The notes under the pieces: generated by a model
Seen by the model: the letters and a program-made list of their open reading frames with translations, nothing else
Told to the model about the DNA's origin: nothing
Databases searched by the model: none
Made by a program: the position numbers and the translations under genes
Assembly (NCBI RefSeq): GCF_001194135.2
Contig: NC_068999.1
Span: 47,540,881 to 47,604,880, forward strand
Source of the DNA: Octopus bimaculoides
Lineage: Eukaryota
DNA: 64,000 nucleotides
Direction: 5' to 3'
Part shown: piece after piece, positions 5,030 to 62,701 of the stretch
Position numbering within the stretch: position 1 is the stretch's first letter
How the letters are laid out: each line of letters starts with the position of its first letter

Positions 5030-5270
5030 ACAAACAAAATACCTATTTCTTTACTGCCCACAAGGGGTTATACACAGAGGGGACAAACAAAGACAGACAA
5101 ACAGATTAAGTCGATTATATCGACCCCAGTGTGTAACTGGTACTTATTTAATCGACCCCGAAAGGATGAAAGGCAAAGTCGACCTTGGCGGAATTTGAAC
5201 TCAGAACGTAGCGGCAGACGAAATACCGCTAAGCATTTCGCCCGGTGTGCTAACGTTTCTGCGAGCTTGT
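5030..5270 (-). mobile_element. SINE family A, near full length
   Basis: High similarity to the copies at 21325, 25295 and 41518. Confidence 0.88.
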
Positions 5271-8689: not shown

Positions 8690-9185
8690 TACCATCACCA
8701 CCACCACCACCACCACCACCACCACCACCACAACCGCCACCACNNNNNNNNNNNNNNNNNNNNNNNNNNNNNNNNNNNNNNNNNNNNNNNNNNNNNNNNN
8801 NNNNNNNNNNNNNNNNNNNNNNNNNNNNNNNNNNNNNNNNNNNNNNNNNNNNNNNNNNNNNNNNNNNNNNNNNNNNNNNNNNNNNNNNNNNNNNNNNNNN
8901 NNNNNNNNNNNNNNNAACCACCACCACAACCACCACCACAACCACCACCACCGCCGCCACCACCACCACTACGATCACCACCACCACCACCATCACTACC
9001 AGAACAAGCACCAACAGCAGCACCATTATCATCACCACAGTTATTACTTCTACCCCCACCCTTCAGCATCATTACCACCAAAACCAGCAGCAGCAGCAGC
9101 ACCACCACCACCACCACCAAAACCACAACCATCATGAGCAATGCCATGACCACCATCACAATTACCAACATCACCATCACCACCA
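8690..9185. repeat. (CAC)n/(CAT)n/(CAG)n low-complexity tract spanning a gap
   Basis: Directly visible; explains the poly-H/P/T/V/G ORFs. Confidence 0.95.
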
Positions 9186-12551: not shown

Positions 12552-12634
12552 TATATATATATATATATATATANNNNNNNNNNNNNNNNNNNNNNNNNNN
12601 NNNNNNNNNNNNNNNNNNNNNNNNNNNNNNNNNG

Positions 12635-15041: not shown

Positions 15042-15337
15042 NNNNNNNNNNNNNNNNNNNNNNNNNNNNNNNNNNNNNNNNNNNNNNNNNNNNNNNNNNN
15101 NNNNNNNNNNNNNNNNNNNNNNNNNNNNNNNNNNNNNNNNNNNNNNNNNNNNNNNNNNNNNNNNNNNNNNNNNNNNNNNNNNNNNNNNNNNNNNNNNNNN
15201 NNNNNNNNNNNNNNNNNNNNNNNNNNNNNNNNNNNNNNNNNNNNNNNNNNNNNNNNNNNNNNNNNNNNNNNNNNNNNNNNNNNNNNNNNNNNNNNNNNNN
15301 NNNNNNNNNNNNNNNNNNNNNNNNNNCGTCGTCATCG

Positions 15338-17535: not shown

Positions 17536-17780
17536 GCTACCGCTACTCAGGTTACGTCTAATCAAATGGTTAAAAATTAGTTTAAACTAAAAAAAAAAAG
17601 AAGTAAAGAGAGTAAAGAAAAGAAAAACAAAACTATTTGTGATGTGTAATCAGTGATTTTGTGTATTGTTGCTTTTCTGGTCTCGGGTTTTTGAAAGGAG
17701 CTTTATCATTATCAGTCAGTAGTCAGCTGGTTTCATTAATCAAACAGCAACTGGTTTTGTTCCTCTTTACACCGGAATTC

Positions 17781-17821
17781 ATGGAAAACATTAAAAGACG
17801 GGAAAATCCAAACGTTCCAAA
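17781..17821 (+). CDS. Candidate distal alternative first coding exon of malic enzyme: MENIKRRENPNVP(K)
   Basis: ATG, 41 nt, gtaagt donor, phase 2 in frame with exon 33938; TCAGTC Inr-like motif at 17712-17717; no homology support. Confidence 0.35.
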
Positions 17822-18514
17822 GTAAGTTTATCATTTAGACTAAGCTCAATCTGTCTACATTTATATAATACGTGGGTGGTGTATATGTTTATAATACGTG
17901 TGTATATTTATTGTTTTTATACATTCTGTGGGTGTGGACGGGGACCCAATATATTGAAAATTATTTTGTTAACGACCAGAATTACGTATTTTCTATGCTA
18001 TATCGGAATATTGAAGACAATTTACATTCTTAAATTGTCATTTGAGATTTCGTTTTCTTTTACTTTATACACACACACAAATATATATATATTTTTTAAT
18101 GATACATCTATCATTTAAAACTATTTCGACTTAAAATTTGCTAAAGATTTAAACTTAACAATTGAATATTAATTTTTACATACAAAAAAAAAAATAAATA
18201 AATTACGATTCTAGTGAATTTTCGTCCGCTAAATTCTCACAACTCGCCCGTAGTAATTTATGTAACAGTGGAAAGTCCGTTGCGACAATTTGGCATTAGC
18301 GTTGTGTCCTTCATTAAGAATGTTCGCTGACAAACGTCATGTAGCGCAACTAAAAGAAAATCGATGCACAACTGTAGACAAACAAGAGATTAGATTTTCT
18401 TCACATCACTCCCTACTGTCTAGAAACTGAATTAATGTAGTCTTTAGATACACAATGACTGAAAACAAAGGATGAGTTAGTTGTAGCTGGGTTGTTTTTG
18501 ATGACGGCTATTAT

Positions 18515-18720
18515 CGTTCAGCGGCGAGCTGGCCAGAATCTTTAACACGTCGGACGAATTGCTTAGCGGCGTTTCTTCCGGCTTTTTATGCTGAGTTCAA
18601 ATCCAGCCTTTCATCCCTTCGGAGTTGATAAAATAAAGTACCAGTGAAATACTGGAGTTGATGTAGTCGACGTGTACCCTCCCCTAAAAAAAAAAACATG
18701 TCCCTGATCCCTGCAACAGT
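18515..18720 (+). mobile_element. SINE family A
   Basis: gcggcgagctggccagaatc...gagttcaaatcc...tttcatcccttcggagttgataaaataaagtaccag. Confidence 0.8.
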
Positions 18721-19290
18721 ATTGTAACCTTGGTCACTTATAGGACATAGAAACTGGCTGACCAGCCTTATGAGTTCTAGGACGCGAGAGTAATATATAT
18801 NNNNNNNNNNNNNNNNNNNNNNNNNNNNNNNNNNNTATATATATATATATATATATATATATCGTTGATAGACGACCTGAGGCGAAATATCAATAATAAC
18901 AACAAAATAAAGTTACCACCTGTTACTTGTCAGTGTGTACAGTTCGTTACTGCGACAATCTCCAGCCATCATAGTCCACACACTTCATGCTCAATCGCTC
19001 CCACAAAGAAAAAGGAAAAAAAAAAAAAAAGAAACTACTATAAAAAACATACCAGGTTTCCCAATCAGTCAAGGTAAATATATAAAACACTTAAAAGTAG
19101 AAATACCACTAGCATAATTAGTTTAATTAACTCTCCCAACACCACCACCACCACCAAACATTATACTTGAATGTACACCATCAATGATAAGTGCAAAGTG
19201 ACCATAACCATTGTCCTATTCTCTAATTCCATTGTAACTACTACTAGAATTAATAGATGTACTAATGTATACTGTATAGATGGGTGACCT

Positions 19291-19507
19291 GTTAAGACTG
19301 TCACACTGGCCTTCATATAATTAATTAATGTAACCTGGAACGATATGTCTATTGGACTCATCTGGTCATTTAATCAACTCCCTGCATGTCAAGACTATCA
19401 CACTGACCTCCTTGCAATTAACTAGTGCATAGTTTACCTGCAATGATACATCTGTAGGACACACCTGGTCATTTAATCAATGACTTGTACGTTAAGACTG
19501 CCACACT
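19291..19507. repeat. Degenerate ~100-bp tandem repeat (about 2.2 units)
   Basis: Units start gttaagactgtcacact (19291), gtcaagactatcacact (19388), gttaagactgccacact (19491); the first two share ctggtcatttaatcaa. Confidence 0.75.
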
Positions 19508-20209
19508 ACACCCTCATACACATAATCATTCACCTACATGCCATAAGTTCCTTGATTGGGACTAAACCCAACAAGAACATCATCATCGTTTAACATCCGC
19601 TTTCCATGCTGGCATGGGTTGGACAGCTTGGCATGGAGCTGGTCAGCTTTATTTAGTCCAGAGTTATAGTAAAAGGCACTTGCTCAAAGTACTGCACAGT
19701 GAGACTGAACCCAAGACCACATGGTCATGAAACAAGCTTCAGTTCTGTCCTGACTAAACCCAGAATTTGTTGTTGACCTACAAAACTTGATAAATCACCA
19801 TTCACTAGTTTTTGACCCTGTCTCCCATTTGGTTGGTAATCTTAGTCAACAAAATCAACATTGGCAATTGTGAATTTAGTAGCTTCTGAATAATAGTAAG
19901 TGCTAATTTATAGGAATTGTGGTCTTGGCTTAAAATATCTACCAAACTAACTGCTTAACCAAGCTAATACTACAGTATTTGTCAGTTGACAACAAATTGT
20001 TAAAAAATTTTTTTATATATATTTTTTTGTTCTCATTGCAGCTGTTTGTATAAATGAAATAAAGTTTTTTGATCCAACTTCTGTAATACCATAGCAACAG
20101 TTTATGAATATAATAATACAACTCTACCTGGGTATTGATTTTTCTTTTTATAGTGGTGCTCCAGCTCAGGCCAACCCACCTGTAAAAGGAATAAAAATCA
20201 CGACTTTTA

Positions 20210-20440
20210 TTTATATGCAGATTCTTCAAGCTGAGCCAAATGGCAGGAGACCTTGGGGTAGACCAAGAGTGAGATGGCTGGATAACATCCATTGTCTCAG
20301 TTGGTCGTGTTTGGGAGTCTAGCAGGAATGTCTAATGACGATTGCTTTTGATACAACCCTATGGAGGAGGTGTCTAAGGGCTTTTCCTCCATGACTCTCC
20401 CAGGAATAGTGGATGGAGATGATGGATGGATGGATAAGCA
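20210..20440 (+). mobile_element. RTE-clade (Rex3/Expander-like) LINE 3' end relic
   Basis: AEPNGRRPWGRPRVRWLDNIHCLSWSCLG with gatggatgg tail. Confidence 0.72.
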
Positions 20441-20628
20441 ATTGTGAAAAGATGATATGATAGTGGATTGAGTGAGGGTCTTTATAGCACATCCATTTAA
20501 CATATGACAGCAAGGATGAATGCACTATATGATCAAAAGATACTTTTGATACCGTTAGAATTTAATGAAAGCATTCAGTTGTCTATATTGACCTCATAAC
20601 GATGGCAATGGGTACTGTTTTTATTAAT

Positions 20629-21770
20629 ATTGGTTTTGAATTTTGGCACAAAGCCAGCAAATTTAGGGGCAGGGTGGGGAGTCGATTTCATCAACCTCAG
20701 TATTCAACTGGTACTCATCTAATTGATCCTGAAAGGACAAAGGGCATAGTCAGCCTCAGTTGAATTTGAACTTAGAATGTAGAAGACAGGCGAAATACCA
20801 CATTTTGCCCAATGTGCTTCTGATTCTGCCATTTTGCTGCCTTCTATTAATATTAGTTGCAAGCTGGCAGAATCATTAGGATATTGGATGAAATGCTCTG
20901 TGGAGTTTCTCCTAGCTTGTTATGCTCTAAATTCAAAGTCTATCTAGGTTGACTTTGCCTTTCATCTTTTTCATCCTTTTGCCATTGATGAAATACTTAC
21001 CAGTTGAGCAATGGAGATTGATATAATCAATTTCCCCACCTTCCAAAATTGTTGAATTTGTGCCAAAATAAGAAAGAATTATTATAATTATTTTTATTAA
21101 GGCAACGAGCTGGTAGAAACGTTAGCATGCTGGCTGAAATGCTTTGCAGTATTTCGTTCGTCTTTGTGTTCTGAGTTCAAATTCTGACAAAGTCGACTTT
21201 GCATTTCATCCTTTCAAGGTCGATAAAATAAATACCAGCTGAGTACTGGGGTCGATGTAATCTACTATACCCCTCCCACAAACTTCAGGCTTTGTGCTTG
21301 CAGTACAAAGGATTATTATTATCAAGATGGCAAGCTGGCAGAAACGTTAGCACGCCGGGCGAAATGCTTAGCGTTATTTCGTCTGTCTTCACGTTCTGAG
21401 TTCAAATTCCGCCGAGGTCGACTTTGCCTTTCATCCTTTTGGGGGTCCATAAATTAAGTACCAGTTACACACTGAGGTCGATGTAATTAACTTAATCCCT
21501 TTGTCTGTCCTTGTTTGTCCCCTCTATGTTTAACCCCTTGTAGGCAATAAAGAAATAAGAATCGTTAGCACACTGGACAAAATGCTTAACGGTATTTTGT
21601 CTGCTGCTACATCTGACTTCGAATTCCACCCAGGTTGAGTTTACCTTTCATCCTTTCGGGGTCAATAAATTAAGTACCAGTGAAATGCTGAGGTCAAAGT
21701 AATCAACTAGTCCCCTGCTCACAAATTTAAGGCCTTGTGCCTCCAGTAGAAAGGATTATTATTATTATTA
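20629..21770. mobile_element. Cluster of five SINE family A copies (one minus, four plus)
   Basis: Copies at ~20629-20843(-), 20859-21075, 21099-21320, 21325-21558 and 21559-21770(+). Confidence 0.85.
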
Positions 21771-22243
21771 CTGCAGTTGATGTTGTTGTTGTTGTTGTTA
21801 TTATTAAACTGTCGTTTCACCAAATTGTGGAACTTTGGATTTATTTCTGCAACATCCATAGCAACAACATCTGTTAATGTTTTTTCCAGATTATTCGTCA
21901 GTGCTAGTTAGGTCAAAACAGAATAAAAAGGTCAGATATTTTATCGCACTGGAACATAAATAAGACAGTAACAGTCAAAGGTGTCAACCATGTGATATAC
22001 TTTCACTCACAAACAATAACAAAACACAGAAGTTTGTTGTGTTCTGTTGTGACATGCACAGCCATTGGCACAAGTTTACCAACATGTACACATAATCACA
22101 ACACACACACACACATAAAAAGAGTCTTGCCACTTTGTTAATGAGTAGTTTGAGTTCTGCAAAGGACAAAACTTAAAATAAACCCTAAAGAACATACCTG
22201 TTATGTACAGTATGTAATACAGTGTATGTGTTGTATGTAATAT

Positions 22244-22795
22244 TAATGTATGCATGTATATATGTAATACATGTCTGTATATATGTAATGCATGTATGTA
22301 TAAATGTAATGTAACGTATGTATATATGTAAGTATGTATGTAATGTATGTGTGTATGCATGTATGTAATGTATGTGTGTTTGTATGTAATGTGTGTTTGT
22401 ATGTATGCATGCATGTATGTATGCATGCATGTATGTGTGTATGCATGTATGTAATGTATGTATGTATGTAATGTATGCCTGTATGTATATATGCATGCAT
22501 GCAATGTATGCATGAATGTAATGTATGCATGGATGCATGAATGTCATGCATGTAATGTATGAATGTAATGGTATGTATGTATGAATGTTGTGTGTGTATG
22601 TATGCCTGTAATGTTATGTAAGTATATATGTATAATGTGTATATGTATGTATGTATGTATGTAAGTATATATGTTATGTACGGTATGTAATGTATGTATG
22701 TAACACACGTAATGTAATGTATGTAATATAATATAATATGTATGTATGTATGTATGTATGTATGAATGTATGTGTATGTATGTAATTTATGTATA
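22244..22795. repeat. Compound (TATG)/(TAATG)/(CATG) microsatellite
   Basis: Directly visible; explains the His/Tyr/Thr ORFs. Confidence 0.95.
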
Positions 22796-23264
22796 AACAC
22801 GACTGCTTATGAACAGGCTTTCATGCAATCTAAAAAGTCTGCTTGAGGTTGATCAAAGAGAAAAGAAACAACAGTAACAGAACAAACATGAAAAGGTGTT
22901 GAGACATAACTTTAAAAATCCTCAGAAAGATTTCTCTTAATGCCTAGTAACTTGTGTGTACATATGAGTAGGGTCGTTTAGAAAAGACACCACCAAACCC
23001 TAATTGTCTGGAAGAAGTTGTAGGTCACTCGTCAAATTATTAAGTTATCTGCCAGTGAAACTAAGATGAAAGTTCACAGGAAAATAAAAGATTTAGGGAA
23101 GAGGAAAATTGAAGTTCTGGAATATGTAAATGTCACTCCATAACTTGATGCTGTCATTCCAGTAAAAGGTGTGAAATGACAGCATTTTAGGTATTAAATT
23201 CTTCTTTTTCATCAAGATTTGGCATATTTCTTTGATTTATTTTTTTTACCACTTGTTTTTTTGC

Positions 23265-23570
23265 ACACACACACACACACACGTATGTACACACACACAC
23301 GTATGTACACACACACACACATGTATGTACACACAGACACACGTATGTACACACACACACACACTTATGTACACACACGCATGCATATATGTATGTACAC
23401 ACACGCATGCATATATGTATGTATACACACACACATATTTGTATGTATACACACACACACCCATACAAGCATATATGTACATACAAATATATACATGTAG
23501 GTATGTACACATTAACATACACATGTGCATATACACATATGCACATGCGTCTATGTATGCACATACATTA
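23265..23570. repeat. (CA)n/(TATG)n compound repeat
   Basis: Directly visible. Confidence 0.92.
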
Positions 23571-24950
23571 ACGTCAACTTTTGAGTATATTTGCACAAAC
23601 AATATTTACAGTGATAAATTGAAATAATGGAAGTGTCACAAATTGTTTAACTATGAGAGAAGATCGCAGGAATTTAATGCTATGTGACAACACACATTTG
23701 CCAGCAGTGCTCCAGCATGGCCAAAGCAAACAATGAATGCATTATCTAATGGCGGTACCATTAACAAACTTGTTCTAATTATATCAGTTCTTTAATTACT
23801 CAGCTAATGTTCATGTTGATTATCAGCCAAAGTAGACTTTGGCCAGTGAACTCACTTTTAAACAATGATAACAATCAAATTGTTGATAAAAATAATTTTC
23901 TAGGAATTTACAAAACAATCATATACATATGCTTCTAAAACATGCTTACATGTATGTGTGCCTGTATGTATAAACGGGGTGTGACGTACACATATGCATT
24001 TACCCATTTTTAAACATAATAATTTACTCCTTATTCAAACATAAAGGTAAAGGCTATAGTGAAAACAAAAGGAAGCCATTTTGAATTGTAAATATATTCT
24101 TTTATTCTTTTATTTGTTTCAGTCATTTGACTGTGGCCATGCTGGAGCACCGCCTTTATGTAAAATTTTGTCAAATAATAATGAGAATAAGAATCCTTTC
24201 TACTATAGGCACAAGGCCTGAAACAATCACACAGCAGCATGCGATGAAATATCTTGCTCAAGAACGCAACACACCACCCTGTCTAGGAACTGAAACCATG
24301 ATCTTGCAATTATGGGTACAACATCCTAACCACTAGGCCATCTGGTCTCACTAGTGTAGCTGGTGGTGGTGGGGTCATAGGGGCAGTCCGCCTTGTGCGG
24401 CACTTTTAAAGGGGCACCACTTTTGGGTCTGCTGTAGGCAATATGTGTTTTTTGTAGGGTCCAGGAGTGGAAAACAGAAGGGTCGCTAGTGTCTGGCCTC
24501 AGCACACACATACAGATAGACAGACATACATCATTATTTAACATGTCTTCTAAGCTGATGAAGATTGGATGGTTCAACTAAATCCACGAATTCAGAAGAC
24601 TGCATCATTGTCTGCTTCTCTATGGTTCCAATGGCTGGATGCCCTTCTTAATACCAACCATTTTACAGAGGGTGCTGGGTGGGTGCCTCTTTACATGGTT
24701 AGGTTTATCTATAATTTATCCGTGTGATGGCTGGGCATTTTTATCCAAGTTTTCACATTAAAATTTTGGGCTATTTGACTTTTTAATATCAATTAATGGC
24801 TTTGCAAGTCTAAAAAAAAAAAAAAAAAAGAAACCAAACATATATATATGTATGTTTATACACACACATACACACTTATACACACATACACTCACATACA
24901 TACATACATACACACACACAATCATACTTGTTGATACTCATTCATGTGCA

Positions 24951-24986
<36 letters not shown>

Positions 24987-25294
24987 GACACACACTTGCA
25001 CACAGACACACAGGCACACATCCGTACAAGCAACATACACATAGACACATACACACTCTTATACACATGCGTTTGCATTCCAAGGTGTATTGTGTCAGTT
25101 TCCTAGGAAGCTAACTTTAAACACTATTGTTTCTGTTTAAAGTTGTTTTTTCCTCTCTGTCTTACTTCCTCACTGCATTCTCCTGTACTGGACAATCCTG
25201 GTTGCTACTGCAGTTGCTGCTACTACTACTACTACTGCTGCTAGACATTTCCTGTTACTACTACTACTGTTGGTCAGTTGTCTAGGGAATTCAG

Positions 25295-25660
25295 GTATGG
25301 CGGCGAGATGGCACCAGAGACGTTAGCACGCCGGGCGAAATGCTTAGCGGTATTTCGTCTGCCACTACGTTCTGAGTTCAAATTCTGCCGAGGTCGACTT
25401 TGCCTTTCATCCTTTCAGGGTCGATTAAATAAGTACCAGTTATGCACTGGGGTCGATATAATCGACTTAATCCGTTTGTCTGTTCTCGTTTGTCCCCTCT
25501 GTGTGTAGCCCTTTATGGGCAATAAAGAAATAAGAAGCTTGCTTCCCAACCACGTGGTTCAGGGTTCAATCCCATTGTGTGGCATCTTAGGCAAGTGTCT
25601 TCTACTGAAGGCCTCAGGGCAACCAAAGCTTTGTGAGTGGATTTGGTAGACAAAAACTGG
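25295..25660 (+). mobile_element. Full-length SINE family A directly followed by a family B head
   Basis: ggcggcgagatggcaccagagacgttagc...gcaataaagaaataag then aagcttgcttcccaaccacgtgg. Confidence 0.88.
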
Positions 25661-26165
25661 CTGCTAGTTGGAATATTAAATTACTGGTTTATCATTAGTG
25701 TTATGTTTTATTTTTATATTCTACTCTAGAACAAATCTAGAGTTTTAACCAACACTGTATGTTATGATAAATGTAAACATAACATTCATATAGTTTAGAA
25801 TATAACACTTGGACACATGATCATCATGAACCCACTGGACAAGAGTTTTATCTGATACTGTCAGTTGTTTCATGATAGAATCATACTAGACATTTAATAC
25901 ACATAAGCACTTATATTTACTTATCATTTATAATTTTATACATGCTTTATTAACTCTTTACATTCTCATTCTATAAAGCTAAAAAGAAGTTTTAAGAAGT
26001 TATAAACTTTCAAGCATAACAGTAGTACCATCCTGTATCAAAATATTATAGTGATTATGCTAGAACAGAAAGTGTAGTGACTGGGTCATAAAAATGTGGT
26101 GAAGTGAAAAAAGAAAAGAAAAGAAGAAACAGGAATAAAACACAAATGAATATAACAATGTATAT

Positions 26166-26231
<66 letters not shown>

Positions 26232-26714
26232 AAATTATTAATATGATTCCAAGTCTGTGTTAGATTTTTTCCTATATTTGTTAAGGTCGAGCAACTAACA
26301 AGTAAATCTGTGGTATTGAGCAGAATTTTTGCAGTAGCCCAGATTTTATACAAAAACAAAACATGTACATGATAACCCTTCCAATCAGTTTAGATCAAAA
26401 GCCATGAGAACCACTGCCTAGTACTGTACCAGAGCATCATTTACTATTATTATTATTATTACTATTTGGCAGTTCAAGGGCAGCAAACTGCAAACTGAAA
26501 GTGACAGGTGTTAACTGTAACTGTTTCTATGTCTACCTGCATGTGGTATGTATAGGGATGTGTGTGTACTCGTGTTGAAGACCAAATTTGTTGTTATTTT
26601 CTTCCAATTTCTTGCCATGAAAAGTTTATTTCAATAATTAAAAGGGGGAAAAAAAAAACATTGAAGTAAAATAGATCAACCGCATTTTATGATTTAGTCC
26701 CTTTATTATTGATT

Positions 26715-27040
26715 TTCAACCTTCGGCAAGTGTCTTCTGCTATAGACCCGGTTCGAACAAAGCCTTGTGAGTGCATTTGGTAGACAGAAACTGAGAAAAG
26801 AAAACAAAAAAACGTCATACACACACACACACACATATGTGTGTGTCCACCACCACCTCTTGGCAACTGGTATTGGTTTGTTTGCACCACGTAACTTAGT
26901 GGTTCAACAAAAAGGGTCCAACAGAATAAGTATCAGACTTTAAACAAAAAAGTACTGGGATTGATTTGTGTTCAAATAAAACCCTTCAAGGGAGTGCACC
27001 TGTATGGCAGCAGTTCAATGACTGAAACAAGTAAAAAAAA
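26715..27040 (+). mobile_element. SINE family B, 5'-truncated
   Basis: cggcaagtgtcttctgctatag...gatttggtagacagaaactga...caatgactgaaacaagtaaaa. Confidence 0.8.
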
Positions 27041-27861
27041 AAATTGAAAATGCCAAAACTGAAAAATACCATTCCCACCAAACTTTTATTTTTATTTTAT
27101 TTCGCAGAATCGTAATCTACAATCGTTAAACATTTAAGAAATTGATTTTTTTTGTTTTTTTGTGCTTCAAATAATTTCCGACTCTATTGTACAGGGACGC
27201 CCAAACTTTCTCTCGCTGCTACTGTGAGGGTGTAGTTGTTGCTGTTGAGTCCTAGGCAACTGCGGACTAAGCAGACACATAACCAAAGACATTCCAAGCA
27301 TGACCATCTCGTCTTTTTATTATTTTTATCTAGTACTGCATTACCCAACATATTGTTTGTTTCTTTTTTAAGACTGCGAGGTATTATTTGAGATTTCTAT
27401 TTGCCGTTTCTAGCCAGAGACTGACCATATACAGATGGTATGTCGTTTGACCAGTCAAACAAGTAAAACGCATTACAGATTATACATTGTAAGAATATAT
27501 TATGTAAGATGATTGTTATATAATTAGGGGACACAAAATGTTGGAGATAATGCATAGGAAATATGAAATATTATTAAACGATGGAGAAGAATAGAGAGGA
27601 TACTGCCAGTGGTGGTGAGGAGGATGATGATGATGTTGATGGGGGTAGCAGTAGTAGTCATGTGACATGAAGGAAGCAGGGAAGACTTAGTCAGGCGTAA
27701 GTGGGGAGAAGAAAGAGGAAGAGACATAAAGTGGCATGAGGAGGAGAAGGAGGAGGAGAATTAGTATAACATAGTGTTTTGTGTGAAAGGCCAACGTGCT
27801 TTCGACTTTTCTTCGCAGCCAGGCAGCTCCAGGTATATAAAAATCTATTACAGCTGATACC

Positions 27862-27911
27862 ATGAGTTCCTATTTAACAAAGATATGGCCACTTTCGCAA
27901 CGAACTCTAAG
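27862..27911 (+). CDS. Candidate first coding exon of malic enzyme encoding a mitochondrial-presequence-like peptide: MSSYLTKIWPLSQRTL(R)
   Basis: accATG context, 50 nt, AG|gtacaa donor, phase 2 in frame with exon 33938; the resulting 30-aa leader has no D/E and is rich in S/T/L/K/R. Confidence 0.62.
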
Positions 27912-30900
27912 GTACAAAATTATTTGCTAATCTTCACTTTTCACTTATACTAAATTACTTTTCATTGTCTCCAATGTCTGTGACAGTCAATGACAAACGA
28001 AGATGACAGTCAAATTGTCAAATCTCTGATAACCGACTTCAAAATCTTAACGATTTATTCTTTATCCTAGTCATGCATTATTTATCTACACCATGTTTTT
28101 TTAATTTTTTTTTTCATGATTCTTTATCTAAATTTACCTCTGATGCTGATAAATTAACGATAACAACTTCATTCGAACTGTTGGTCTTCCTGTCATATTC
28201 TTTATTTTTCTGCGGTTTTCTTATACAATCAATAATGTCTATTTCATTTCACCCCCTTGTTTAATGTTGTCATTGATAAAACGGTTTTAATTATTACAGT
28301 TGTCTCAACACCCTTTCATTATTATGAATGTGTGGGCATCAAATCTTTCCATTATTTCTCAAATCATCTAAACAAAGGCTTTAGGAATCTGTGTTTGTTG
28401 TTTGTTAGAATATATTTTTGAGGGAAAGTATGGGCTTCACAACATAACAGACCTATGTCTAATTAATACATATATCTTAAGAAATATTCATACTTAAAAT
28501 ACTTATAATTGTCTTTTGTTTTTCCACGCGAGTTAATCAATGTTCCCTGCAGAATATATAATGTAACAGGAGTTACACAATAGCGGTCTTTGATGTATAT
28601 ATATTGTGCAATAGGGGTCGGTTAGGCAATATATACTTTAAAGTAACATTGCGAGAAAGACAAGACATTGGAAGTGTACATACACAAATCACAAAAATAA
28701 TAGCATCGCATTGAAATTTATGATTTATAATTTTAAAATGCGCATCAGATCACTATTTTTATTGAAATGAGATACAATAAAGCAAATAAACGGCATAGTT
28801 TCGTTTAAACTATTATTATTATTACTTCTATACATACTGAGTGTGGAGGTGGGAAATCTGTTTCTGTTATATTGATAGTTTCATTAATGATCCTCTAACA
28901 GGTTATTGAACTAAATAAATACATATGACCACTGAATTGTAGTCGTCCTTGCTGTTTCTAGCTTCAACCGTTCATTATCACCTCTGATATATTTCTTCCC
29001 TCTACGTCATTAGAGGAAATCCTTCGAGGTTAATTATAAATAGTATTTCTCTCCTTATTCCCCGGTAGCCTTCACCTAGAGTTTAATGTTTATTTCAAAT
29101 ATCCTTGCTACAACACATTTTAATTATGGCATTCTGCTGTTTACAATTCATTAGAAAGCTCTTTAAAAATAATCTGGTGAAATTTTAAGGCGCAAATTTC
29201 AAATGGTTTATATTTTGCTCTATTCTCGAATTGATGCCGATAAAGAAAGACGTATCGTTTTTTAACTCGAAGAACTAAGCGCACCATTTCATCAAGATAT
29301 CTATTCCTTGTCTATTTTAGTTTCCGCATGTTCCCTGCGGCAAATTTCTGATCTTTGAAGTGGAGAGGTACAACGTGTAATGATTATATTTATACCAGTG
29401 AAACACTACTTACTAAGTAGCCATCATAAAAAAATATTATCTGTTGCGTATTTAGGTGTTTGGACGATTTTCAGGGAGTGAAGAACCGATTGAGCTCTGG
29501 CGTAGTTAGAACTCAAAACGACGACACACTAATCTAGGTTTTCAATAATCTTTATATCCCTCTCCCCACAATTATTTATAACAACTAGCTGAATGGAATA
29601 TTTATCAAATAAGACAAAAGACTTGTGAAATATCTGCACCAAAAGAGTATAGTCATAAAAATAAAGACTGATAAAGAAATTGAGGTGGCTTTAACAGTTC
29701 GTGTTTAATATTAATATTTAATACATAAGAGGTTTCTGGATGTAGGAAGAAATATGTTCCAAAAAGAATTGGTGAAGAAAATGTCTTAAATGTTTTAAAG
29801 TATCATTTGATGTTGTACAATGTTCATCCAAATGCAGTATTTATCCAAATGAGGTTTTGTCAATCGTTTCATCAAACATGTGAAGGAATGCCTCCTCAGT
29901 TAATGGGATCTATGCCTGGAAAAGTTCCTGTCCATGGTACAAAATTGGACAAGATTTATTATGGAAAACAAGCACTTTCCCAAGTTTCTCTTCTCCATGC
30001 CAAAGGAAAGCAAGGACTGGTACAGCTTGGCACCCGTGTCATTGCAGGAATTGTCATCAAGACAATGAACCAGAAGCAGATAGTATTTGGTATCTTATCT
30101 GATGCTCTACAAATTCTGTTGAACCACTGCCATGGATTGGTTCTTTAATTATTAACCCCAAAAAGATGAAAAGCAAAATTGACTTCAGCGGGATTTGAAT
30201 TCAGAATCGAGAAAGCGAGAAGGAATATGGCAATACATTGCAACACTCTCCAACTCCATTAATAGATGCTGTCCCTTGCAAACACAAAGCTCATGCAATA
30301 AAATTGCATTACATCTCCTTTAATTCCTTCCATTATTTAAAGCTGTATCTTATAACAGTTGCAATAATCTTTATAGATAGAGTTACAATGATTATAATGA
30401 CAGTTTTCCAATTGTAACAGAGAAGTTTTGCAGTTATATTGACAAAGATGTTTTGTGTAAATGAATGAAGAACAATATTTAATTTCTTATTAAAATGACC
30501 TTTTATTTATTATATAATTATTGTTGTTACAGTATATAAAATGTATAGCCTCATCGAGTTGTTTGTATACACGTTGTTTGTAGATGCAGTAAAATATCTG
30601 CCTTTTGGTTCAGTTGTGTTTGCTAGTTGTTAGTTTCAACTCTGTGACTACCAGAGAGAGAGAGAGTTGTATTGTGAAGCGGAGAGTATATGCAGCATGT
30701 TATCCCTTTCCTCTCCATTGGTACTGGGAATGCTCATTGATCAGAGGCAGCAACCAAAGAGACTGAAAACTATTTGGTTTAAAATTTTATAATTTGCTGA
30801 TAACTGAATTAGGTCAGCTAAAGCAATAGAGTTCTTCATCCTTAATCAGATTTGACTGATGAATACCGCAAAAAAAAAAAAAAAGAGGTCAGTACATTCC

Positions 30901-32304
30901 CATTAATCTCTGAGTGCAAAAAGGCTAAAACAATTGACTGTGGAAATGTAAGAATTTGGTTTCAAATCCTAGCTCAGCTATTTTGTAGTTGTTTGCTACA
31001 GAGTCTGAAATATTCATAGCATCAGGGATTGATTCGGTATTTTGTTTGCTATCAATGTTTGTCAATTGTTTATTTGATCCACATGAGATAATATACTCTG
31101 TTAATCCTCAAGAATCACAGATTTGTTTTTCCTGCTTTAGATCTAAAATCTAGTTTGTTGTAGTCCATAATTTCATCTGCCTTGATACCAAACTGGACTG
31201 CTGTATAAGACATTGTTACTGAAGGATATTTGTCCTGATAACTCAAATCAGATATGCTCAGAATTTTGGACTAACTGAGGAATTGTTCCATAACTCAAAA
31301 TCATGCTGCTTAACATGTTAACTCCCATGATCTGTTACCAGTACTTACTGGTGATGCCACGTATTTTGTGCATTTACACTGCATACTGTTTAATTACAAG
31401 GAAATGTAATTTTTTGGCGTTTTCACAGTATTTCATAATTAAACTTCAATATTTGGCACTCATGTTATTTAAACATCCTCAAAACCATGTCAAAGATACA
31501 GAATAAAATATTTTCTCAAATTATAAAAATGTACCACTGGTGGTGCATGTGGTAGTTGTGTGAAGTTGGTGATGAACTGCTAGTGCTATTTGTGATGGTT
31601 AATGTGTTAAATATGCACTGTAATAGTAGTATATATAAAGAGTGCTTATGTATTACTATTACATATAAGCACTACTTATATGTAATAGTGAGTCCAACCC
31701 ATGCTAGCATGGAAAGCGGACGTTAAACGATGATGATGATGATGATGAGAGAGCTGTATTAATGGTCAGTTGGTTCTCATTATTACCTGAGCTGATGGCA
31801 GCTCTGTAAGATAAAGTGTTCTGATCAAGGACACAATGTGCTGACCTATCTGCCATTTGATCCCATGACCTTACAATTATGAGCCTGTCACCCTAAACTA
31901 CTTGGTCACATACCATTAAATAGTTTTTAACCCTATTGTTAAAAACAACCGATTTGGTTAACATTTGTTTTTTATTAGACATTTCAAGTAAGACTTAAAG
32001 AACACTCATTTGGAATGGTAAACAAAAATGCAATTATTTATTTGAAAGACTGTCAGAAGAGAAATTTATAGACTTGTATATCTGTCAGAGAGTAAGAATT
32101 AAACAAGATCAAAACGACCAAATATATATTATAACATATAATGATGTACAACAGTCAAGATAAATTAAAGTTGCAGTTTCTTGGCTGTCGTTTCATTTCA
32201 TCATAGCTCAGTAATTTGAAAATGTAAGAGATTCGTTTACTTAATTCACAGAAGCCAAGTTATTTTCTTTACATTCACCATTATTGTTGGTTTCATTTTT
32301 AATT

Positions 32305-32640
32305 ACATGGCTGTGTGGCAAGAAGTTTCCTTCACGACCATATGGTTTTGGTTTCAGTGTCTTCTACTGTAAGCCCTGGACCAACCAAAGCTTTATGAGT
32401 AGATTTGGTAGACAGAAACTGAAAGAAGTTGTGTGTGTCTGTTTGTCCCCCACCACCACCACCATCGCTTGACAACTGATGCAGGCGTGTTTACATCCCC
32501 GTAACTCAGCGTTTCAGCAAAAAGAGACCGATAGAATAAGTACTAGGCTTACAAAGAATAAGTCCCGGGGTCGATTTGTTCGATTAAAGGCGGTGCTCCA
32601 GCATGGCCACAGTCAAATGACTGAAACAAATAAAAGAGTC
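32305..32640 (+). mobile_element. SINE family B, full length
   Basis: tggctgtgtggcaagaag head to ccagcatggccacagtcaaatgactgaaacaaataaaaga tail. Confidence 0.85.
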
Positions 32641-32789
32641 AAAGAATGTTTCCTCTGATAAATATTTAGCAGATCTCGTGAAAGTTGAAAGCATTTTGAA
32701 ATATTAAAAATGATTGAAAGAACGTTAGCATCAGAATTAAAATGGTTTTCAGATATTTTTATTTTGTTTCCTGTTAATGTGTTTATCTT

Positions 32790-33145
32790 TTACTTGTTTC
32801 AGTCACTAAACTGCAGCCATGCTGGGGCACTGCCTTGAAGAATTTTATTTAAATGACTTCTGTACTTATTTTTTTAAAGCCTGGTACTCACTCTCTTTTG
32901 CCAAACTGCTAAGTTACAGGGATATAAACACACCAGTACTGGTTGTTAATAGGTAGTGGAGGATAATAAAGACACACACACACACCCGATGGGCTTCCAC
33001 AGTTTCCGTCTACCAAATCCACTTAAAAGGCTTTGGTCACCTCTAAACTATAGTAGAAGACACTTTCCCAGGTGCCACACAGTGGAACTGAACCCAGAAC
33101 CATGTGGTTGGGAAGTAAGCTTCTTACCACACAGCCACACCTGCC
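32790..33145 (-). mobile_element. SINE family B, full length, inverted relative to the 32305 copy
   Basis: tttacttgtttcagtca... to ...cttcttaccacacagccacacctgcc. Confidence 0.85.
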
Positions 33146-33937
33146 AGTCTGTCGTAAGATTATATATATAAAAAACAAACCTTTATGTTTGATGGGACAT
33201 TCAGATAGATAGAATGCTTGTTATACATTTCTTGAGTTTCACATACAATAGTAGAACAGATGAATAATGCAAAAGTATAAATTATTCATTGAAAAGCTAA
33301 ATCATTGCAAATTATATTGTTTAAATATTTACATCAATGCTCACTATAGAATCAATGATTATGGATCATATTAGATACAGTTTGTACATCAGAGTTCAAT
33401 AAAAGGGAAATCATTGATTAAACAACTTTATAGGCATGACTGTGTAGGCGTAGGTGTATGTTATATAGTGAAACTGTATACCCCTGCCGGTAAAAAGTGG
33501 TTATAAATAGACCAGTCTAGTCGGTGTCTTATGGATCTATCAACAATGGCAAGACAGAAGTTAGTGTATTACTATTCTGGCACAAAGATACAACAATATC
33601 CAATGACTAGTAACTACTATGGCTACTAGCATAAAACAGCAACTACAGTGCAACAGCAGTCGCACATCACACCAGTGGGAGGAACCCACTTTACAACTGT
33701 GTGTGTTTGTGTCTGTTCATCCCCCACCACTGCTTGACAACCAGTGTTGGTGTGTTTACATCCCCACAACTTAGTGGTTCATCAAAAGAAGACCAACTGG
33801 ATAAGTATCAGTCTTTAAAATAAAATAAGTACTAGGCTCTAGCAATATGCTAGAAAATGCAATATGTGAAAATATTTCTACTGAATCTAGACAAACATGT
33901 TTATTCATTGACATGCCCTTTTTTCCCTCTGTTTCAG

Positions 33938-34088
33938 AGCCAATTCTGTCTCTGTTGGAAATATCCATACCAAAACTATGGATATGTTCAAGACATCTGG
34001 GTTGACCTGGAAAGAATCTTCAGCAAAACATGTGAGCCAAGCAAAATCCCGAGGCATAGATATCATCCGCAACCCAAGAATAAACAAG
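33938..34088 (+). CDS. ME1: Malic enzyme exon: ANSVSVGNIHTKT-MDMFKTSGLTWKESSAKHVSQAKSRGIDIIRNPRINK (internal Met at 33978)
   Basis: gtttcag acceptor, gtatac donor; RGIDIIRNPRINK matches the malic enzyme N-terminal RGxDxxRNPxLNK. Confidence 0.92.
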
Positions 34089-35882: not shown

Positions 35883-36166
35883 AGCCTGGCTTTCACATTA
35901 AGGGAACGTCAGATAATGGGTATTCATGGCTTGCTGCCTCCCTGCATCATTACTCAAGATCAGCAAGCTTACCGAGTGATGGAAAATTTCCGACGCCGTC
36001 CCACTGATTTAGACAAATATATTTATTTGACAGCCTTACTTGATAGAAATGAGCGTTTATTTTACAAAGTCCTCACAGAACATGTAGAAGAAATGATGCC
36101 AATAGTATACACCCCGACTGTTGGGCTGGCCTGCCAGCAGTATGGGCTTTTGTTCAGGAGACCAAG
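35883..36166 (+). CDS. ME1: Malic enzyme exon: SLAFTLRERQ...MPIVYTPTVGLACQQYGLLFRRP(R)
   Basis: cttgcag/gtaact, 284 nt; contains the catalytic Tyr motif IVYTPTVG. Confidence 0.97.
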
Positions 36167-37740: not shown

Positions 37741-37816
37741 AGGTTTATTCATCTCCATTAAAGATAAAGGCCATATATTTGATATCCTATGCAATTGGCC
37801 AGATAATAGTGTAAAG
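37741..37816 (+). CDS. ME1: Malic enzyme exon: GLFISIKDKGHIFDILCNWPDNSVK
   Basis: cttcag/gtatgt, 76 nt, phase 2/0. Confidence 0.96.
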
Positions 37817-37888: not shown

Positions 37889-38086
<198 letters not shown>

Positions 38087-39467: not shown

Positions 39468-39571
39468 GTCATCCGCAATGACCCACTTTATATTGGACTG
39501 AATATGCCCCGAGCTACTGGAAAGGAATACGATGAGTTCATAGATGAATTTATGCAAGCAGTTGTTCGAAG
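39468..39571 (+). CDS. ME1: Malic enzyme exon: [34 protein letters not shown](R)
   Basis: catttag/gtacgt, 104 nt; DPLYIGL motif. Confidence 0.97.
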
Positions 39572-39687: not shown

Positions 39688-40062
39688 TCATCATCATCAT
39701 CATCATCGTTTAACGTCCGCTTTCCATGCTAGCATGGATTGGACGATTTGACTGAGGACTGGTGAACCAGATGGCTACACCAGGCTCCAATCTGATTTGG
39801 CAGAGTTTCTACAGTTGGATGCCCTTCCTAACGCCAACCACTCCGAGAGTGTAGTGGGTGCTTTTACGTGCCACCGGCACGAAGGCCAGTCAGGCGGTAC
39901 TGGCAACGGCCACGCTCAAAATGGTGTATTCTACGTGCCACCTGCACAGGAGCCAGTCCAGCGGCACTGGAAACGATCTCGCACGAATGTCTTTACATGT
40001 GCCACCGGCACAAGTGCCAGGAAGGCGACGCTGGGCACAGGTGCCATCACGATTTTGCTTTA
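39688..40062 (-). mobile_element. Retroposon family D, well-preserved copy with (CAT)n tail
   Basis: catcatcatcgtttaacgtccgctttccatgctagc...; possible 9-bp TSD tgtatcata at 39679-39687 and 40063-40071. Confidence 0.85.
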
Positions 40063-40097: not shown

Positions 40098-40346
<249 letters not shown>

Positions 40347-41517: not shown

Positions 41518-41752
41518 AAGGTGGCGAGCTGGCAGAAACGTTAGCACGCCGGGCGAAATGCTTAGCGGCATTTCGTCTGCCGTTACGTTCTGAGTTCAAA
41601 TTCCACCGAGGTTGACTTAACCTTTCATCCTTTCGGGGTCGATAAATTAAGTACCAGTTACGCACTGGGGGGGCAATGTAATCGACTTAACCCCTTTGTC
41701 TGCCCTTGTTTGTCCCCTCTATGTTTAGCCCCCTGTGGGCAATAAAGAAATA
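41518..41752 (+). mobile_element. SINE family A, full length with 17-bp TSD (one mismatch)
   Basis: agaatcgtgtccattga (41501-41517) / agaattgtgtccattga (41753-41769); A-box-like tggcagaaacg and B box gagttcaaattcc. Confidence 0.94.
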
Positions 41753-41914
41753 AGAATTGTGTCCATTGATTGAATGACACTTTATAAGCAATGTTTTGTG
41801 TTGAGACAACTAAATACAATCTATCAAACTTTAAATTTTAAGAGTTGTGTTGTCTCTGTGTTTATACTTCTTTGTTTTTAATGTTGTTGTTGTTCTTTAT
41901 TTCTTATTTCTCAG

Positions 41915-42012
41915 GCACAGCAGCTGTTGCAGCGGCAGGAATAATCGCTAGTATGAGAATAACAAAACGAAAGTTAATTGATAATTTATTTTTATTTCAA
42001 GGTGCCGGTGAG
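41915..42012 (+). CDS. ME1: Malic enzyme exon: TAAVAAAGIIASMRITKRKLIDNLFLFQGAGE
   Basis: tctcag/gtacgt, 98 nt; Rossmann GAGE motif. Confidence 0.97.
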
Positions 42013-44112: not shown

Positions 44113-44226
44113 GCTAATATTGGAATAGCTAATTTGGTAGCATTAGCTATGATTGAAGAGGGCAGCACTGAGGCAGAGGCCTTCTCTAAAATATGGATGG
44201 TTGACTCCAGAGGCTTGCTTGTAAAG
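44113..44226 (+). CDS. ME1: Malic enzyme exon: ANIGIANLVALAMIEEGSTEAEAFSKIWMVDSRGLLVK
   Basis: ctttcag/gtatgt, 114 nt; WMVDSRG motif. Confidence 0.97.
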
Positions 44227-44660: not shown

Positions 44661-44772
44661 AATCGACCATCTGGAGGTGTGACGGGCCACAAACTTGACT
44701 TTGCAAAAGACCATGCACCTGTTGACACTTTTGATGAAGCTGTTGAAATATTGAAGCCAACTGCTATTATTG
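44661..44772 (+). CDS. ME1: Malic enzyme exon: NRPSGGVTGHKLDFAKDHAPVDTFDEAVEILKPTAII(G)
   Basis: tttgcag/gtagga, 112 nt. Confidence 0.96.
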
Positions 44773-44947: not shown

Positions 44948-45090
44948 GTGCTTCTGCAGTTGCTGGTGCTTTTACTGAAAAGATAATCCGAAATATGGCT
45001 AAATATAATGAAAGACCAATAATTTTTGCTCTGAGCAATCCTACTAGCAAAGCAGAATGTACAGCGGAACAAGCTTATACCTTCTCTGAG
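44948..45090 (+). CDS. ME1: Malic enzyme exon: ASAVAGAFTEKIIRNMAKYNERPIIFALSNPTSKAECTAEQAYTFSE
   Basis: tttttag/gtaaat, 143 nt; FALSNPT motif. Confidence 0.98.
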
Positions 45091-46113: not shown

Positions 46114-46284
46114 GGTCGCTGTGTATTTGCTAGTGGGAGTCCTTTTAACCCGGTGACACTCAATGGGAAGACCTATTACACAGGTCAAGGTAATAATGCC
46201 TATATCTTCCCTGGAGTGGCTATGGCTGTTCTCACTTGCGGAGCTCGTCATATTCCAGAAGCCATTTTCTTGCATGCAGCACAG
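46114..46284 (+). CDS. ME1: Malic enzyme exon: [57 protein letters not shown]
   Basis: atttcag/gtaact, 171 nt; FASGSPF and GQGNN motifs. Confidence 0.98.
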
Positions 46285-47850: not shown

Positions 47851-47905
47851 ATTTCAACACTTGTTTTCTCTAAAACTTTTTAATTTCTTTTTATTTTCTT
47901 TACAG

Positions 47906-48142
47906 AAATTGGCCGAACTAGTTAAAGATTCCCATTTGGAAGAAGGACGAGTTTATCCTCCATTAAATGAAATAAATGAAGTATCTACAGTAATTGCAGC
48001 ATCTTTAGCAGAATATATGTACCGTGAAGGGATTGCAACAACTTACCCAGAACCTGCAGACAAAGACGCCTTTATCCGTACATTTATCTATAATACTGAT
48101 TATGAAGATTTTGTACCCCCAATGTGGGACTGGAAAGAGTAA
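47906..48142 (+). CDS. ME1: Malic enzyme last exon: KLAELVKDSHLEEGRVYPPL...YEDFVPPMWDWKE*
   Basis: tttacag acceptor, TAA at 48140-48142; GRVYPPL motif. Confidence 0.97.
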   Translation, partial: KLAELVKDSHLEEGRVYPPLNEINEVSTVIAASLAEYMYREGIATTYPEPADKDAFIRTFIYNTDYEDFVPPMWDWKE

Positions 48143-50670
48143 TTGGAACAATAGCAACACTACTCCTATGTCTTTTGATTTCTATTTTTGCGTCTGACAA
48201 ATCTTGTAATCGACAAAAAAGCACTTCCTATTAATTATTTTAATTGTCCTTGTTTTAAATTAATTAAAAATTGTTTCAGTTGATTGTTATATAAAATGGT
48301 TAATGAATTGAAGTTATTGTATAAGTAGTTGCACCCTCAATAACATCAGTGTAGGAAGCAGCAGCAATAGCGAAATAAATGTAGGTGTTTATTGATAAAT
48401 CTATGCATGTCCACCTATTTAGACAGTAGCATTCAATGATTAAAATTGTTATTTTAATGTATTAATTAGTTTGCATTGGTTTTTTTTCCTGACAAATGTT
48501 TAACCTTATTTCCATCATTTACATTGAACGGATATGTGTCTTCATCTTGTTTGTTGCCTCATCAGACTCAGTTGGATTTTACTGTCTTGAAATCTTGTCC
48601 CTTTCAAGAGGGATTTGGTTTTTGCATCATTAGCTGTAGACTCTCAATTTGTCACCTGTTATGACCGCTTTCAAAAAAACTTTGCATCTTCCTTGACACA
48701 GTCAAGATCCTGCACAGCTGAAACTCAATCATTTTGAGACAACCACAAAACATCTCACTTAGAGTTCATGTGCGACAATGTTCAAGGTCAATCAGTGCCA
48801 AGTGGCTTCACTGTTTACTTCAGCTCTGTTACCATAGCAACAGTCCCAATACATTTTGATCAAACCTTGTTAGCTGTTTTATCAAAGATGGTTTACTCTA
48901 AGAAAATTATGCTGTTCTGGCGGTGGGAAAACTTATGGCTTTGTATTGTGAAGAGACATACTAAATACAGTTGCAGCTGCTTGTTTGGCCACTTTGAATA
49001 GGTTAAAGAAGTCAAGCAATTACAACTGAGGTTTTTTTGAAAACTAATTGAGTACCTGGACCTCACACACAAAGAAGCAGTAATAGACGAGATGGAAGTT
49101 TTCATTAATCACTTTATTTATCAAAGAAAATTACCAACAACGAAAGAAAAATAGGAAAAAAATAGGAATTTATGAAAAAAAAAAAAAAAACATATTTACA
49201 ATGGTGTTGGTGTTATTTTTCCTGAATATACAGAAAATTATAAAATATTAACTAATGAATGTGGTCCCTTTTTGAGATGAAATGAAACTAAAATCTCATC
49301 TTCAGACGATGTGATAAATATTGACACTGGACAGAGTCAGCTGTTAATTACAAATGACTTACGACAATTTAAAATTTGAAGCAAAACTTATTAACGAAGT
49401 GTATTACTGATTTTATCATTACACCTAAAACCGAAAAGGTCAAAATAAAATATCCACAGATTTGTTGCAGTTTCAGATAATCTTTGTTCTTAAAGATTAT
49501 TTTCTTTTGCAGTTTCTCATTGGTATTCAGACATAAAAACAATCTTGTGATTTTAGAGATGATCTATCAACATTTATAGAAAATATAAAGCATTTTTATA
49601 TTTGAGGAACTTTTTGAAAATTCTGTTACTGTATTTCACATTTTAAAAGAACTACTACAAATCCAGTAAGTTTTTAATTAATATCCATAATGAAGGGGTT
49701 CAGATGCATTTAAATGACTCAATATCTGCTAATTAGAAATTGTTTTTGTCAAACCAATTCAAAAAATTTAATAGGTTCTGCTTTGGTTTTCAATAAGATT
49801 CTGTATGTTAAGTTTTAAGTTCTACAAATTCTTTGAAATAAAAAAAATAATAAATAAATAAAACGATAAAGCAACCAGCTTTAGGAAGGAGAATGATGGC
49901 TGCATCAGGAGTAAGACTGCTCAAAGACCCCAGGAGGGAATTAAAAATCCTCGCCGTTACTACTGTTGCATTTTTGCTTCATTTCTGAAAAACAAACAAC
50001 AGGAAGTTATGGTGATAGGTTGAAATATTTCATTAAAAGAAAAATACAAGACTGAAGAATGCATCTGAATTACAATTAAATTTTAGGAATTTTGTCAAAG
50101 AAATTTTTTAAATTGGGATTCAGATTATTGGAATTTAGAGAAAAAGTCAAATTTTGAAGACAATATTTTCCCCAATTCTATTAGAATTTTCAAAAGTTAA
50201 CTACAGATTCCATAATATTTTTGTTTGTGGAACTCAAATGAATCAAACAAACTTTAGGCACCTCTTAAAAATTTAAATATAAAAACAGAAAAAAATTTTT
50301 AATGAAAACTAGAATTTTGTTCTAATTACAAACTTAGTTTGGTATGACAAACCTAAATGATTCAATGCAGAGTTGACACTGACTGATAAAATGTCACTTG
50401 GTCAAACATACAATGCAGTCCATTTAGTTTCGTTAGTTTTGAAAGTTCATTAGAGGTTTAAAACCTGTCTAAATGTCTCACTTCTCTGCAGCATGTCATC
50501 ACTGAGTACAAAATGTCTGCTTCATGACGATGATGAACAAGTAGCTCAGTTGTTGCACACAAGTTTCAATGAGTTAACGAGGACCATTGAATGGGAGAGT
50601 AGTAACATGTAGTTTGAGACTTGCTCTAAGTCAAGCTGTCTTTCCTCTATGGTGATTATAACATTGATGC

Positions 50671-60221: not shown

Positions 60222-60261
<40 letters not shown>

Positions 60262-62691: not shown

Positions 62692-62701
62692 NNNNNNNNN
62701 N

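Follow-up and report, generated by a model that had tools for sequence, protein, structure and literature searches.

A 64,000-nucleotide stretch of the Octopus bimaculoides genome (NC_068999.1, positions 47,540,881 to 47,604,880, forward strand; in the following, the window), which lies within chromosome CM046619.1 of assembly GCA_001194135.2, contains a gene for nicotinamide adenine dinucleotide phosphate (NADP)-dependent malic enzyme that is annotated with two alternative first exons. We propose that its isoform X1 carries a presequence and is mitochondrial, that the forms made with an alternative first exon are cytosolic, and that a single gene would serve both compartments. Based on sequence comparison, we assign this reading a probability of roughly 0.75.

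According to this proposal, residues 1 to about 30 of X1, encoded by exon 1 and the start of exon 2, would form a matrix-targeting presequence recognised by TOM20/TIM23, and the processing peptidase would cut between R14 and a conserved IHT motif, leaving X1 in mitochondria. The upstream first exon of isoform X2 would swap the first 17 residues for an acidic/basic peptide unlike a presequence. In cuttlefish, a non-coding alternative 5' exon would play the analogous role by forcing initiation at an internal Met. The X2 and internal-Met forms would most likely remain cytosolic, i.e., one gene would provide NADP-malic enzyme in both compartments, in a lineage that apparently has no copy of the S-type paralogue known from other molluscs (described below). 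Different compartments for the two isoforms are thus plausible.

The 5' part of the X1 transcript consists of the following features.

27763..27861, plus strand: 5' untranslated region (UTR) of the X1 first exon, minimum extent (RNA contig SRR32601320_9169 and identity to O. sinensis)
27862..27911, plus strand: coding part of the X1 first exon, Met1-Leu16 and two bases of Arg17 (transcript and identity to the N-terminus of XP_014767925.1)
27912..33937, plus strand: intron between the X1 first exon and shared exon 2, gtacaa...tgtttcag (junction 27911>33938 in the RNA contig)
33938..34088, plus strand: shared exon 2 (sequence, gene model, RNA contig)

The start codon (accATG, 27862) has an A at -3, and an upstream in-frame TAA is read from the sequence at 27838. 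The coding part ends with ...CTAAG at 27911, followed by the donor gtacaa; the acceptor ...tgtttcag ends at 33937, and exon 2 begins with A33938. Splicing 27911>33938 joins AG and A to Arg17 in frame and yields the translation MSSYLTKIWPLSQRTLRANSVSVGNIHTKT-MDMFK, which reads MSSYLTKIWPLSQRTLR-ANSVSVGNIHTKT-MDMFK... when split by exon. That is, positions 27862-27911 encode the N-terminal half of the putative mitochondrial presequence, while exon 2 carries the rest of the presequence-like region (ANSVSVGNIHTKT), the internal Met31 (ATG 33978-33980) and the start of the conserved core (RGIDIIRNPRINK).

The X1 exon is transcribed and spliced to 33938, which is settled by transcript and database evidence. 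The 603-aa protein is encoded without any difference by the Logan RNA contig SRR32601320_9169 (2236 nt), which aligns in order to 13/13 exons with 100% identity and crosses 27911>33938. The only mismatch, in the exon 6 segment, most likely lies in an alignment overhang past the exon 6 boundary, as judged from the coordinates, rather than marking an RNA-editing site. Nucleotides 5-153 of the contig are colinear with window 27763-27911 (100% identity) and nucleotides 1675-2234 correspond to window 47902-48461. Since 27763-27861 does not contain any ATG, no start codon precedes AUG 27862 in the known 5' part of the transcript; given this position and its good context, the 603-aa protein is the expected product.

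An earlier reading of the bare sequence, which we refer to as the first-pass annotation, had proposed the ATG at 27862, the donor AG/gtacaa at 27911 and the in-frame splice to 33938, and all three are borne out by sequence, gene model and RNA contig; the junction, for which it had suggested looking for spliced reads, is the one crossed by SRR32601320_9169. Its totals of 603 and 573 aa agree with the 13-exon model, in which the 17781 exon gives 600 aa. The 5' UTR also holds an acceptor-like ttttcttcgcag (27807-27818) and a TATA-like GGTATATAAAAA (27832-27843). From the former, the first-pass annotation had deduced a further non-coding exon upstream. The only transcript on hand is colinear over 27763-27911 and reads through ttttcttcgcag, so that such an exon is unsupported. 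The first four nucleotides of the contig are CCGG where the genome has AATT (27759-27762); these bases might stem from the assembly or from an adapter, or else belong to the end of another exon upstream that is spliced to a ttag acceptor at 27761-27764. The TATA-like GGTATATAAAAA precedes ATG 27862 by about 20-30 nt and is unchanged (100%) in O. sinensis; transcription directed by it would begin at the ATG or immediately after it. As promoter of the observed transcript we rejected it, since this transcript includes the element and has its 5' end at least 70 nt further upstream.

The exon had been described as unannotated, which does not hold. The 603-aa product is identical (100% identity, 100% coverage) to RefSeq XP_014767925.1, the O. 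bimaculoides NADP-malic enzyme isoform X1, and is also found as UniProt A0A0L8IG73 and in EukProt; the 600-aa product is RefSeq XP_014767933.1, isoform X2. The NCBI gene span corresponds to window 17781-48142. Exon, junction and both isoforms are therefore already in the public annotation. The sequences of both entries are identical to those derived here, and the database names are silent on mitochondrial targeting or compartment. A query with the 67 N-terminal residues alone gave no match, which reflects a word-index limit and not absence, as the full-length query retrieves the identical protein. Literature searches covering malic enzyme in cephalopods and octopus and its alternative first exons retrieved no paper on the isoforms of this enzyme in cephalopods.

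We also assessed how often such an exon arises by chance. The 16-kb interval 17830-33900 contains 332 ATG..GT candidates of phase 2. Seven of them have a donor at least equal to that at 27911, and 2/7 are acid-free with at least two K/R, namely the X1 exon and a poly-K run. By itself, the sequence pattern of the X1 exon is suggestive. The many candidates in the intron would fit an unused chance open reading frame with a chance donor, but this is refuted by the spliced transcript that contains the exon, and RefSeq and UniProt contain the identical product, with orthologous N-termini known from three octopus species and from decapodiforms; the probability of a chance exon is practically nil. Compared with O. 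sinensis, the X1 exon is gap-free and forms a conservation island (UTR 94.9%, coding sequence 94.0%, flanks 83-90% identity), with one non-synonymous and two synonymous changes in its coding part.

The N-terminus of X1 resembles a mitochondrial presequence. Residues 1-30 contain no D/E, four K/R and nine S/T (net charge +4), and the first acidic residue is D32. The hydrophobic moment reaches 0.68 at residues 7-17 (11-residue window; z = 1.8, p = 0.05 vs. shuffles, i.e., top 5%), which is a modest signal. A phi-x-x-phi-phi motif of the TOM20 type is found at residues 5-9 (LTKIW; LTKLC in Sepia), and a hydrophobic core of the signal-peptide type is absent. Downstream of R14 and R17, the octopus IHT fits a conserved [LFIV]HT[ST] motif. 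An N-terminus of this general character is maintained in cuttlefish, in two further octopus species and in long-form malic enzymes from other molluscs; the individual residues are poorly conserved (about 5/17 identical between octopus and Sepia). Altogether, sequence features and orthology make the presequence reading of X1 well supported.

The orthology is seen when molluscan malic enzymes are compared. L-type enzymes (about 596-612 aa) have an extension of 46-59 residues that is acid-free in its first 25 residues and contains [LFIV]HT[ST], while S-type enzymes (short, cytosolic-type; about 572-594 aa) start with MAE... and have an acidic extension of 19-27 residues. In neighbour-joining trees (567 trimmed columns, without bootstrap), Octopus and Sepia group with the molluscan L-type sequences, nested within their clade. 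The annelid Owenia falls into the separate S-type clade, and the L/S split therefore predates molluscs. By this placement, the gene is the cephalopod orthologue of the molluscan L-type. L-type proteins from Acanthosepion pharaonis (CAE1265250.1), Aplysia, Pomacea, Patella and Mizuhopecten are orthologous and 65-87% identical to the octopus enzyme, and their extensions are alike: they have an acid-free start, are S/T-rich and basic, and carry HT[ST] at about residues 27-35, as in octopus. Among solved structures, human mitochondrial NADP-ME3 (PDB 8E76) is the best match with 789 bits, followed by ME1 (765) and ME2 (717); the matches cover residues 49-603 approximately, with E down to 1e-236. 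The score gap between ME3 and ME1 is too small to call the octopus gene an orthologue of ME3 specifically.

These comparisons bear on whether the 17-residue extension is a targeting signal at all. X1 might be cytosolic with a neutral extension, or the extension might be another signal (endoplasmic reticulum/secretory), and the non-canonical cleavage motif would agree with that. The lack of a signal-peptide-type hydrophobic core, a composition and amphipathicity typical of presequences, the orthology to molluscan L-types with the same kind of extension and mitochondrial ME3 as the nearest solved relative all speak against it, and we consider it very improbable.

Isoform X2 replaces the first exon of X1 by one further upstream.

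17781..17821, plus strand: alternative first coding exon of X2, MENIKRRENPNVP and two bases of Lys14, donor gtaagt (gene model, XP_014767933.1, start of the NCBI span)

This exon is also of phase 2 and joins the same acceptor at 33938 in frame, and the resulting 600-aa protein begins with MENIKRRENPNVPK. The two first exons are mutually exclusive and share one common acceptor; RefSeq lists the pair for both O. bimaculoides and O. sinensis, and the O. vulgaris annotation has it as well. In O. sinensis and O. vulgaris, X1 starts with MSSFLTKIWPLSQRTLR... and X2 with MENDKKRTSPNVLK.... The X2 N-terminus contains E2 and E8, has three acidic residues within the first 30, a hydrophobic moment of 0.41 and no phi-x-x-phi-phi motif. 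The form initiated at Met31 begins with MDM. Shortly after the 17781 exon, the intron contains an assembly gap (18801-18835).

A related arrangement is found in decapodiforms. Transcript-sized Logan contigs of Acanthosepion pharaonis and another decapodiform encode 603-aa proteins beginning with MALRLTKLCRVLTPSSANILSSNTVHTSS... and MALKLTNMCRALTPLSANILASNPVHTSS..., and the 603-aa presequence transcripts of Sepia are indexed in 127 blocks. Sepia transcripts from two independent runs (SRR8281687, nt 1-105; SRR9970004, nt 1-46) have a different, non-coding 5' exon that is joined exactly at the exon 1/2 junction. Here, an in-frame TAA lies four codons upstream, and the internal Met gives a 572-aa protein without presequence. 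Both forms are thus present as transcripts in Sepia. We considered a retained intron as the source of the alternative 5' sequence and rejected it, since the sequence ends with ...GTTGTCG, lacks AG and a pyrimidine tract, and diverges exactly at the exon 1/2 boundary. At the DNA level, the alternative exon of Sepia showed no detectable homology to the 17781 exon of octopus.

Dual localisation could also arise from the X1 mRNA alone, either by leaky scanning to Met31/Met33 or by inefficient import, which is a well-known mode of dual targeting. The context of Met31 is strong (A at -3, G at +4) and would permit this. However, AUG 27862 is the first in the transcript and itself has an A at -3, and dedicated alternative exons exist in two lineages, such that a single-mRNA origin of dual localisation appears quite unlikely.

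To find further malic enzymes of cephalopods, we searched with a profile of twelve S-type proteins. Gastropod and bivalve S-types score at least 1034 bits, while the only cephalopod matches among those listed are the L-type clusters with 1006 and 995 bits; unnamed high-scoring transcripts all nest within gastropod or bivalve subclades. In the gastropods and bivalves compared here, the L-type gene is accompanied by a separate S-type gene; none from a cephalopod is among the matches listed. A malic enzyme model of Iphiclides podalirius (P0002) is unusually long (1039 aa) and has the top score in both searches; it probably represents two tandem genes fused in annotation.

Several further claims of the first-pass annotation can be related to these results. 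The 30 residues without acidic amino acids and with four K/R, described there as presequence-like, are confirmed by the composition count, and its IHT motif matches the [LFIV]HT[ST] that is conserved across molluscan long-form malic enzymes. It had named a lack of conservation in other coleoids as a reason to abandon the idea; the peptide type is kept in octopuses and decapodiforms. The paralogue count, which it had proposed to determine, favours a single gene, as no cephalopod cytosolic-type gene is found among the matches listed. The pair of first exons annotated in three octopus species and the alternative Sepia transcripts likewise favour its idea of one gene for two compartments, which is plausible.

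Several observations weigh against the proposal of one gene for two compartments. The amphipathicity of X1 is only borderline (p about 0.05). The cleavage motifs are restricted to the loose R-2 candidates R14 and R17, with no canonical R-3 or R-10, and the exact cleavage site can therefore not be named. No X2 transcript was found in Logan for O. bimaculoides, O. vulgaris or O. sinensis, where gene models (RefSeq and O. vulgaris) are the source of the 17781 exon. Because the acid-free ANSVSVGNIHTKT with its conserved HT motif is also part of X2, some import of this isoform is possible. Positions 17781-17821 show 78% identity to O. sinensis (9 changes in 41 nt, nearly all amino-acid changing, with the reading frame open), and the 100-nt flanks (17681-17780, 17822-17921) are 94% identical. 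Lower conservation than in the flanks is unusual in a coding exon. The peptide might be free of constraint or of little importance, or else initiation might occur at the internal Met, as it does in Sepia. Finally, the finding that no cephalopod S-type or more divergent malic enzyme paralogue is among the best 120 protein matches refers to protein lists and not to a genome-wide tblastn.

Some of these points would suit an enzyme that is purely mitochondrial. In that case, the alternative first exons would reflect alternative (e.g., tissue-specific) promoters, and the X2 and Met31 products would be imported via the acid-free segment or be minor and without a role. The retained ANSVSVGNIHTKT, the missing octopus X2 transcripts and the fast evolution of the X2 peptide agree with this, as do the 127 index blocks of the Sepia presequence form compared with two contigs for the alternative form. 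On the other hand, presequence function normally needs the extreme N-terminus, which in X2 begins with ME (three acidic residues within the first 30) and in the Met31 form with MDM; the arrangement of alternative 5' exons is kept in octopus and cuttlefish; and no separate cytosolic-type gene was seen in cephalopods among the matches listed. We therefore regard a purely mitochondrial enzyme as unlikely, though it deserves to be taken seriously, and prefer the reading in which X1 is mitochondrial and the alternative-first-exon forms are cytosolic.

How this situation might have evolved is a more tentative matter. Coleoids may have lost the ancient S-type gene, which gastropods, bivalves and at least one annelid still have, and later regained a cytosolic NADP-malic enzyme by equipping the mitochondrial-type gene with an alternative first exon that skips the presequence. 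This exon would have been kept since the octopus-cuttlefish split, coding in octopus and non-coding in cuttlefish. We consider this scenario possible, but with less than even odds.

Including or leaving out a mitochondrial presequence through the choice of first exon is a classical mechanism, e.g., in human DUT-M/DUT-N and UNG1/UNG2. As in these genes, two mutually exclusive 5' exons are spliced onto a common exon in octopus and only one is presequence-like; the compartments of the octopus isoforms are predictions. The human malic enzymes ME3 (604-aa chain) and ME1 (572-aa chain) have the same two-domain architecture, and the octopus products of 603 and 573 aa parallel these lengths. The ME3 alignment begins only at about residue 49, so that homology does not extend to the presequences. 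Vertebrates use a separate gene for each compartment, unlike what we propose for octopus. Several annotated N-termini, some of them presequence-like, are also found in Cotesia glomerata (X1/X2/X3; P0090/P0088/P0092) and Daphnia magna (X2/X4; P0104/P0105), and some bivalve S-type transcripts from Logan (P0039, P0053, P0149) have a presequence-like extension before the usual MAE start. These cases belong to other clades, involve independent exons and come from database models or assembled transcripts only. Judged from these sequences, switching of the N-terminus seems recurrent in protostome malic enzyme genes.

The gene was rebuilt with conserved motifs of malic enzymes and canonical splice sites as guides. 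Its 12 shared exons, from 33938 to the stop codon at 48140-48142, are combined with either of the two first exons; the resulting 13-exon model has GT..AG at every intron. Product lengths are 603 aa from ATG 27862, 600 aa from ATG 17781 and 573 aa from Met31 (ATG 33978). The shared features downstream of exon 2 are as follows; the exons are based on gene model and RNA contig.

35883..36166, plus strand: exon 3
37741..37816, plus strand: exon 4
37913..38074, plus strand: exon 5, with the presumed catalytic Lys in GIPVGKL
39468..39571, plus strand: exon 6
40148..40257, plus strand: exon 7, with the presumed metal/substrate motifs QFEDF and FNDDIQG
41915..42012, plus strand: exon 8, with the presumed dinucleotide-binding motif GAGEA
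44113..44226, plus strand: exon 9
44661..44772, plus strand: exon 10
44948..45090, plus strand: exon 11
46114..46284, plus strand: exon 12
47906..48142, plus strand: last coding exon, stop codon TAA at 48140-48142
48143..48461, plus strand: 3' UTR, minimum extent (RNA contig SRR32601320_9169)

Both malic enzyme domains, PF00390 (malic) and PF03949 (Malic_M), are present according to precomputed Pfam results for the identical protein. The translated model contains VYTPTVG, GIPVGKL, QFEDF, FNDDIQGT and GAGEA, which we take, from knowledge of malic enzyme structures, to be catalytic, metal and dinucleotide motifs. A preference for NADP is suggested by the database names and by ME3 and ME1 scores above that of ME2.

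Elsewhere in the window, a minus-strand neighbour from about 49960 to beyond 51142 matches Cyclin_N and Cyclin_C_2, with only a faint match to CycT2-like_C, and thus encodes a cyclin-family protein. A dispersed repeat of about 220-240 bp occurs in introns and flanks, with copies of 87-92% identity at 21324-21562, 25315-25536 and 41518-41757 (plus strand) and at 5044-5261 (minus strand); it is probably an element resembling short interspersed nuclear elements. Short (CAT/CAC)n tracts encoding His runs are found at about 39688-39744 and 60242-60298. Assembly gaps (N runs) are located at 4542-5013, 8744-8915, 12574-12633, 15042-15326, 18801-18835 and 62692-62701.

As a genome feature, the finding has small value because exon, junction and both isoforms are already publicly annotated. 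What is added is modest and interpretive: the single enzyme of this family that the matches listed contain for cephalopods belongs to the mitochondrial-type clade and shows, in both octopus and cuttlefish, a 5' exon switch by which the putative targeting peptide is lost. Dual compartmentation, which is plausible, gains some new comparative support. If true, the gene would be a clean case of paralogue loss offset by subfunctionalisation at the isoform level. It would also be a warning that names like "NADP-dependent malic enzyme" hide the compartment, and it would bear on the cytosolic NADPH supply and the mitochondrial malate/pyruvate cycling of cephalopods.

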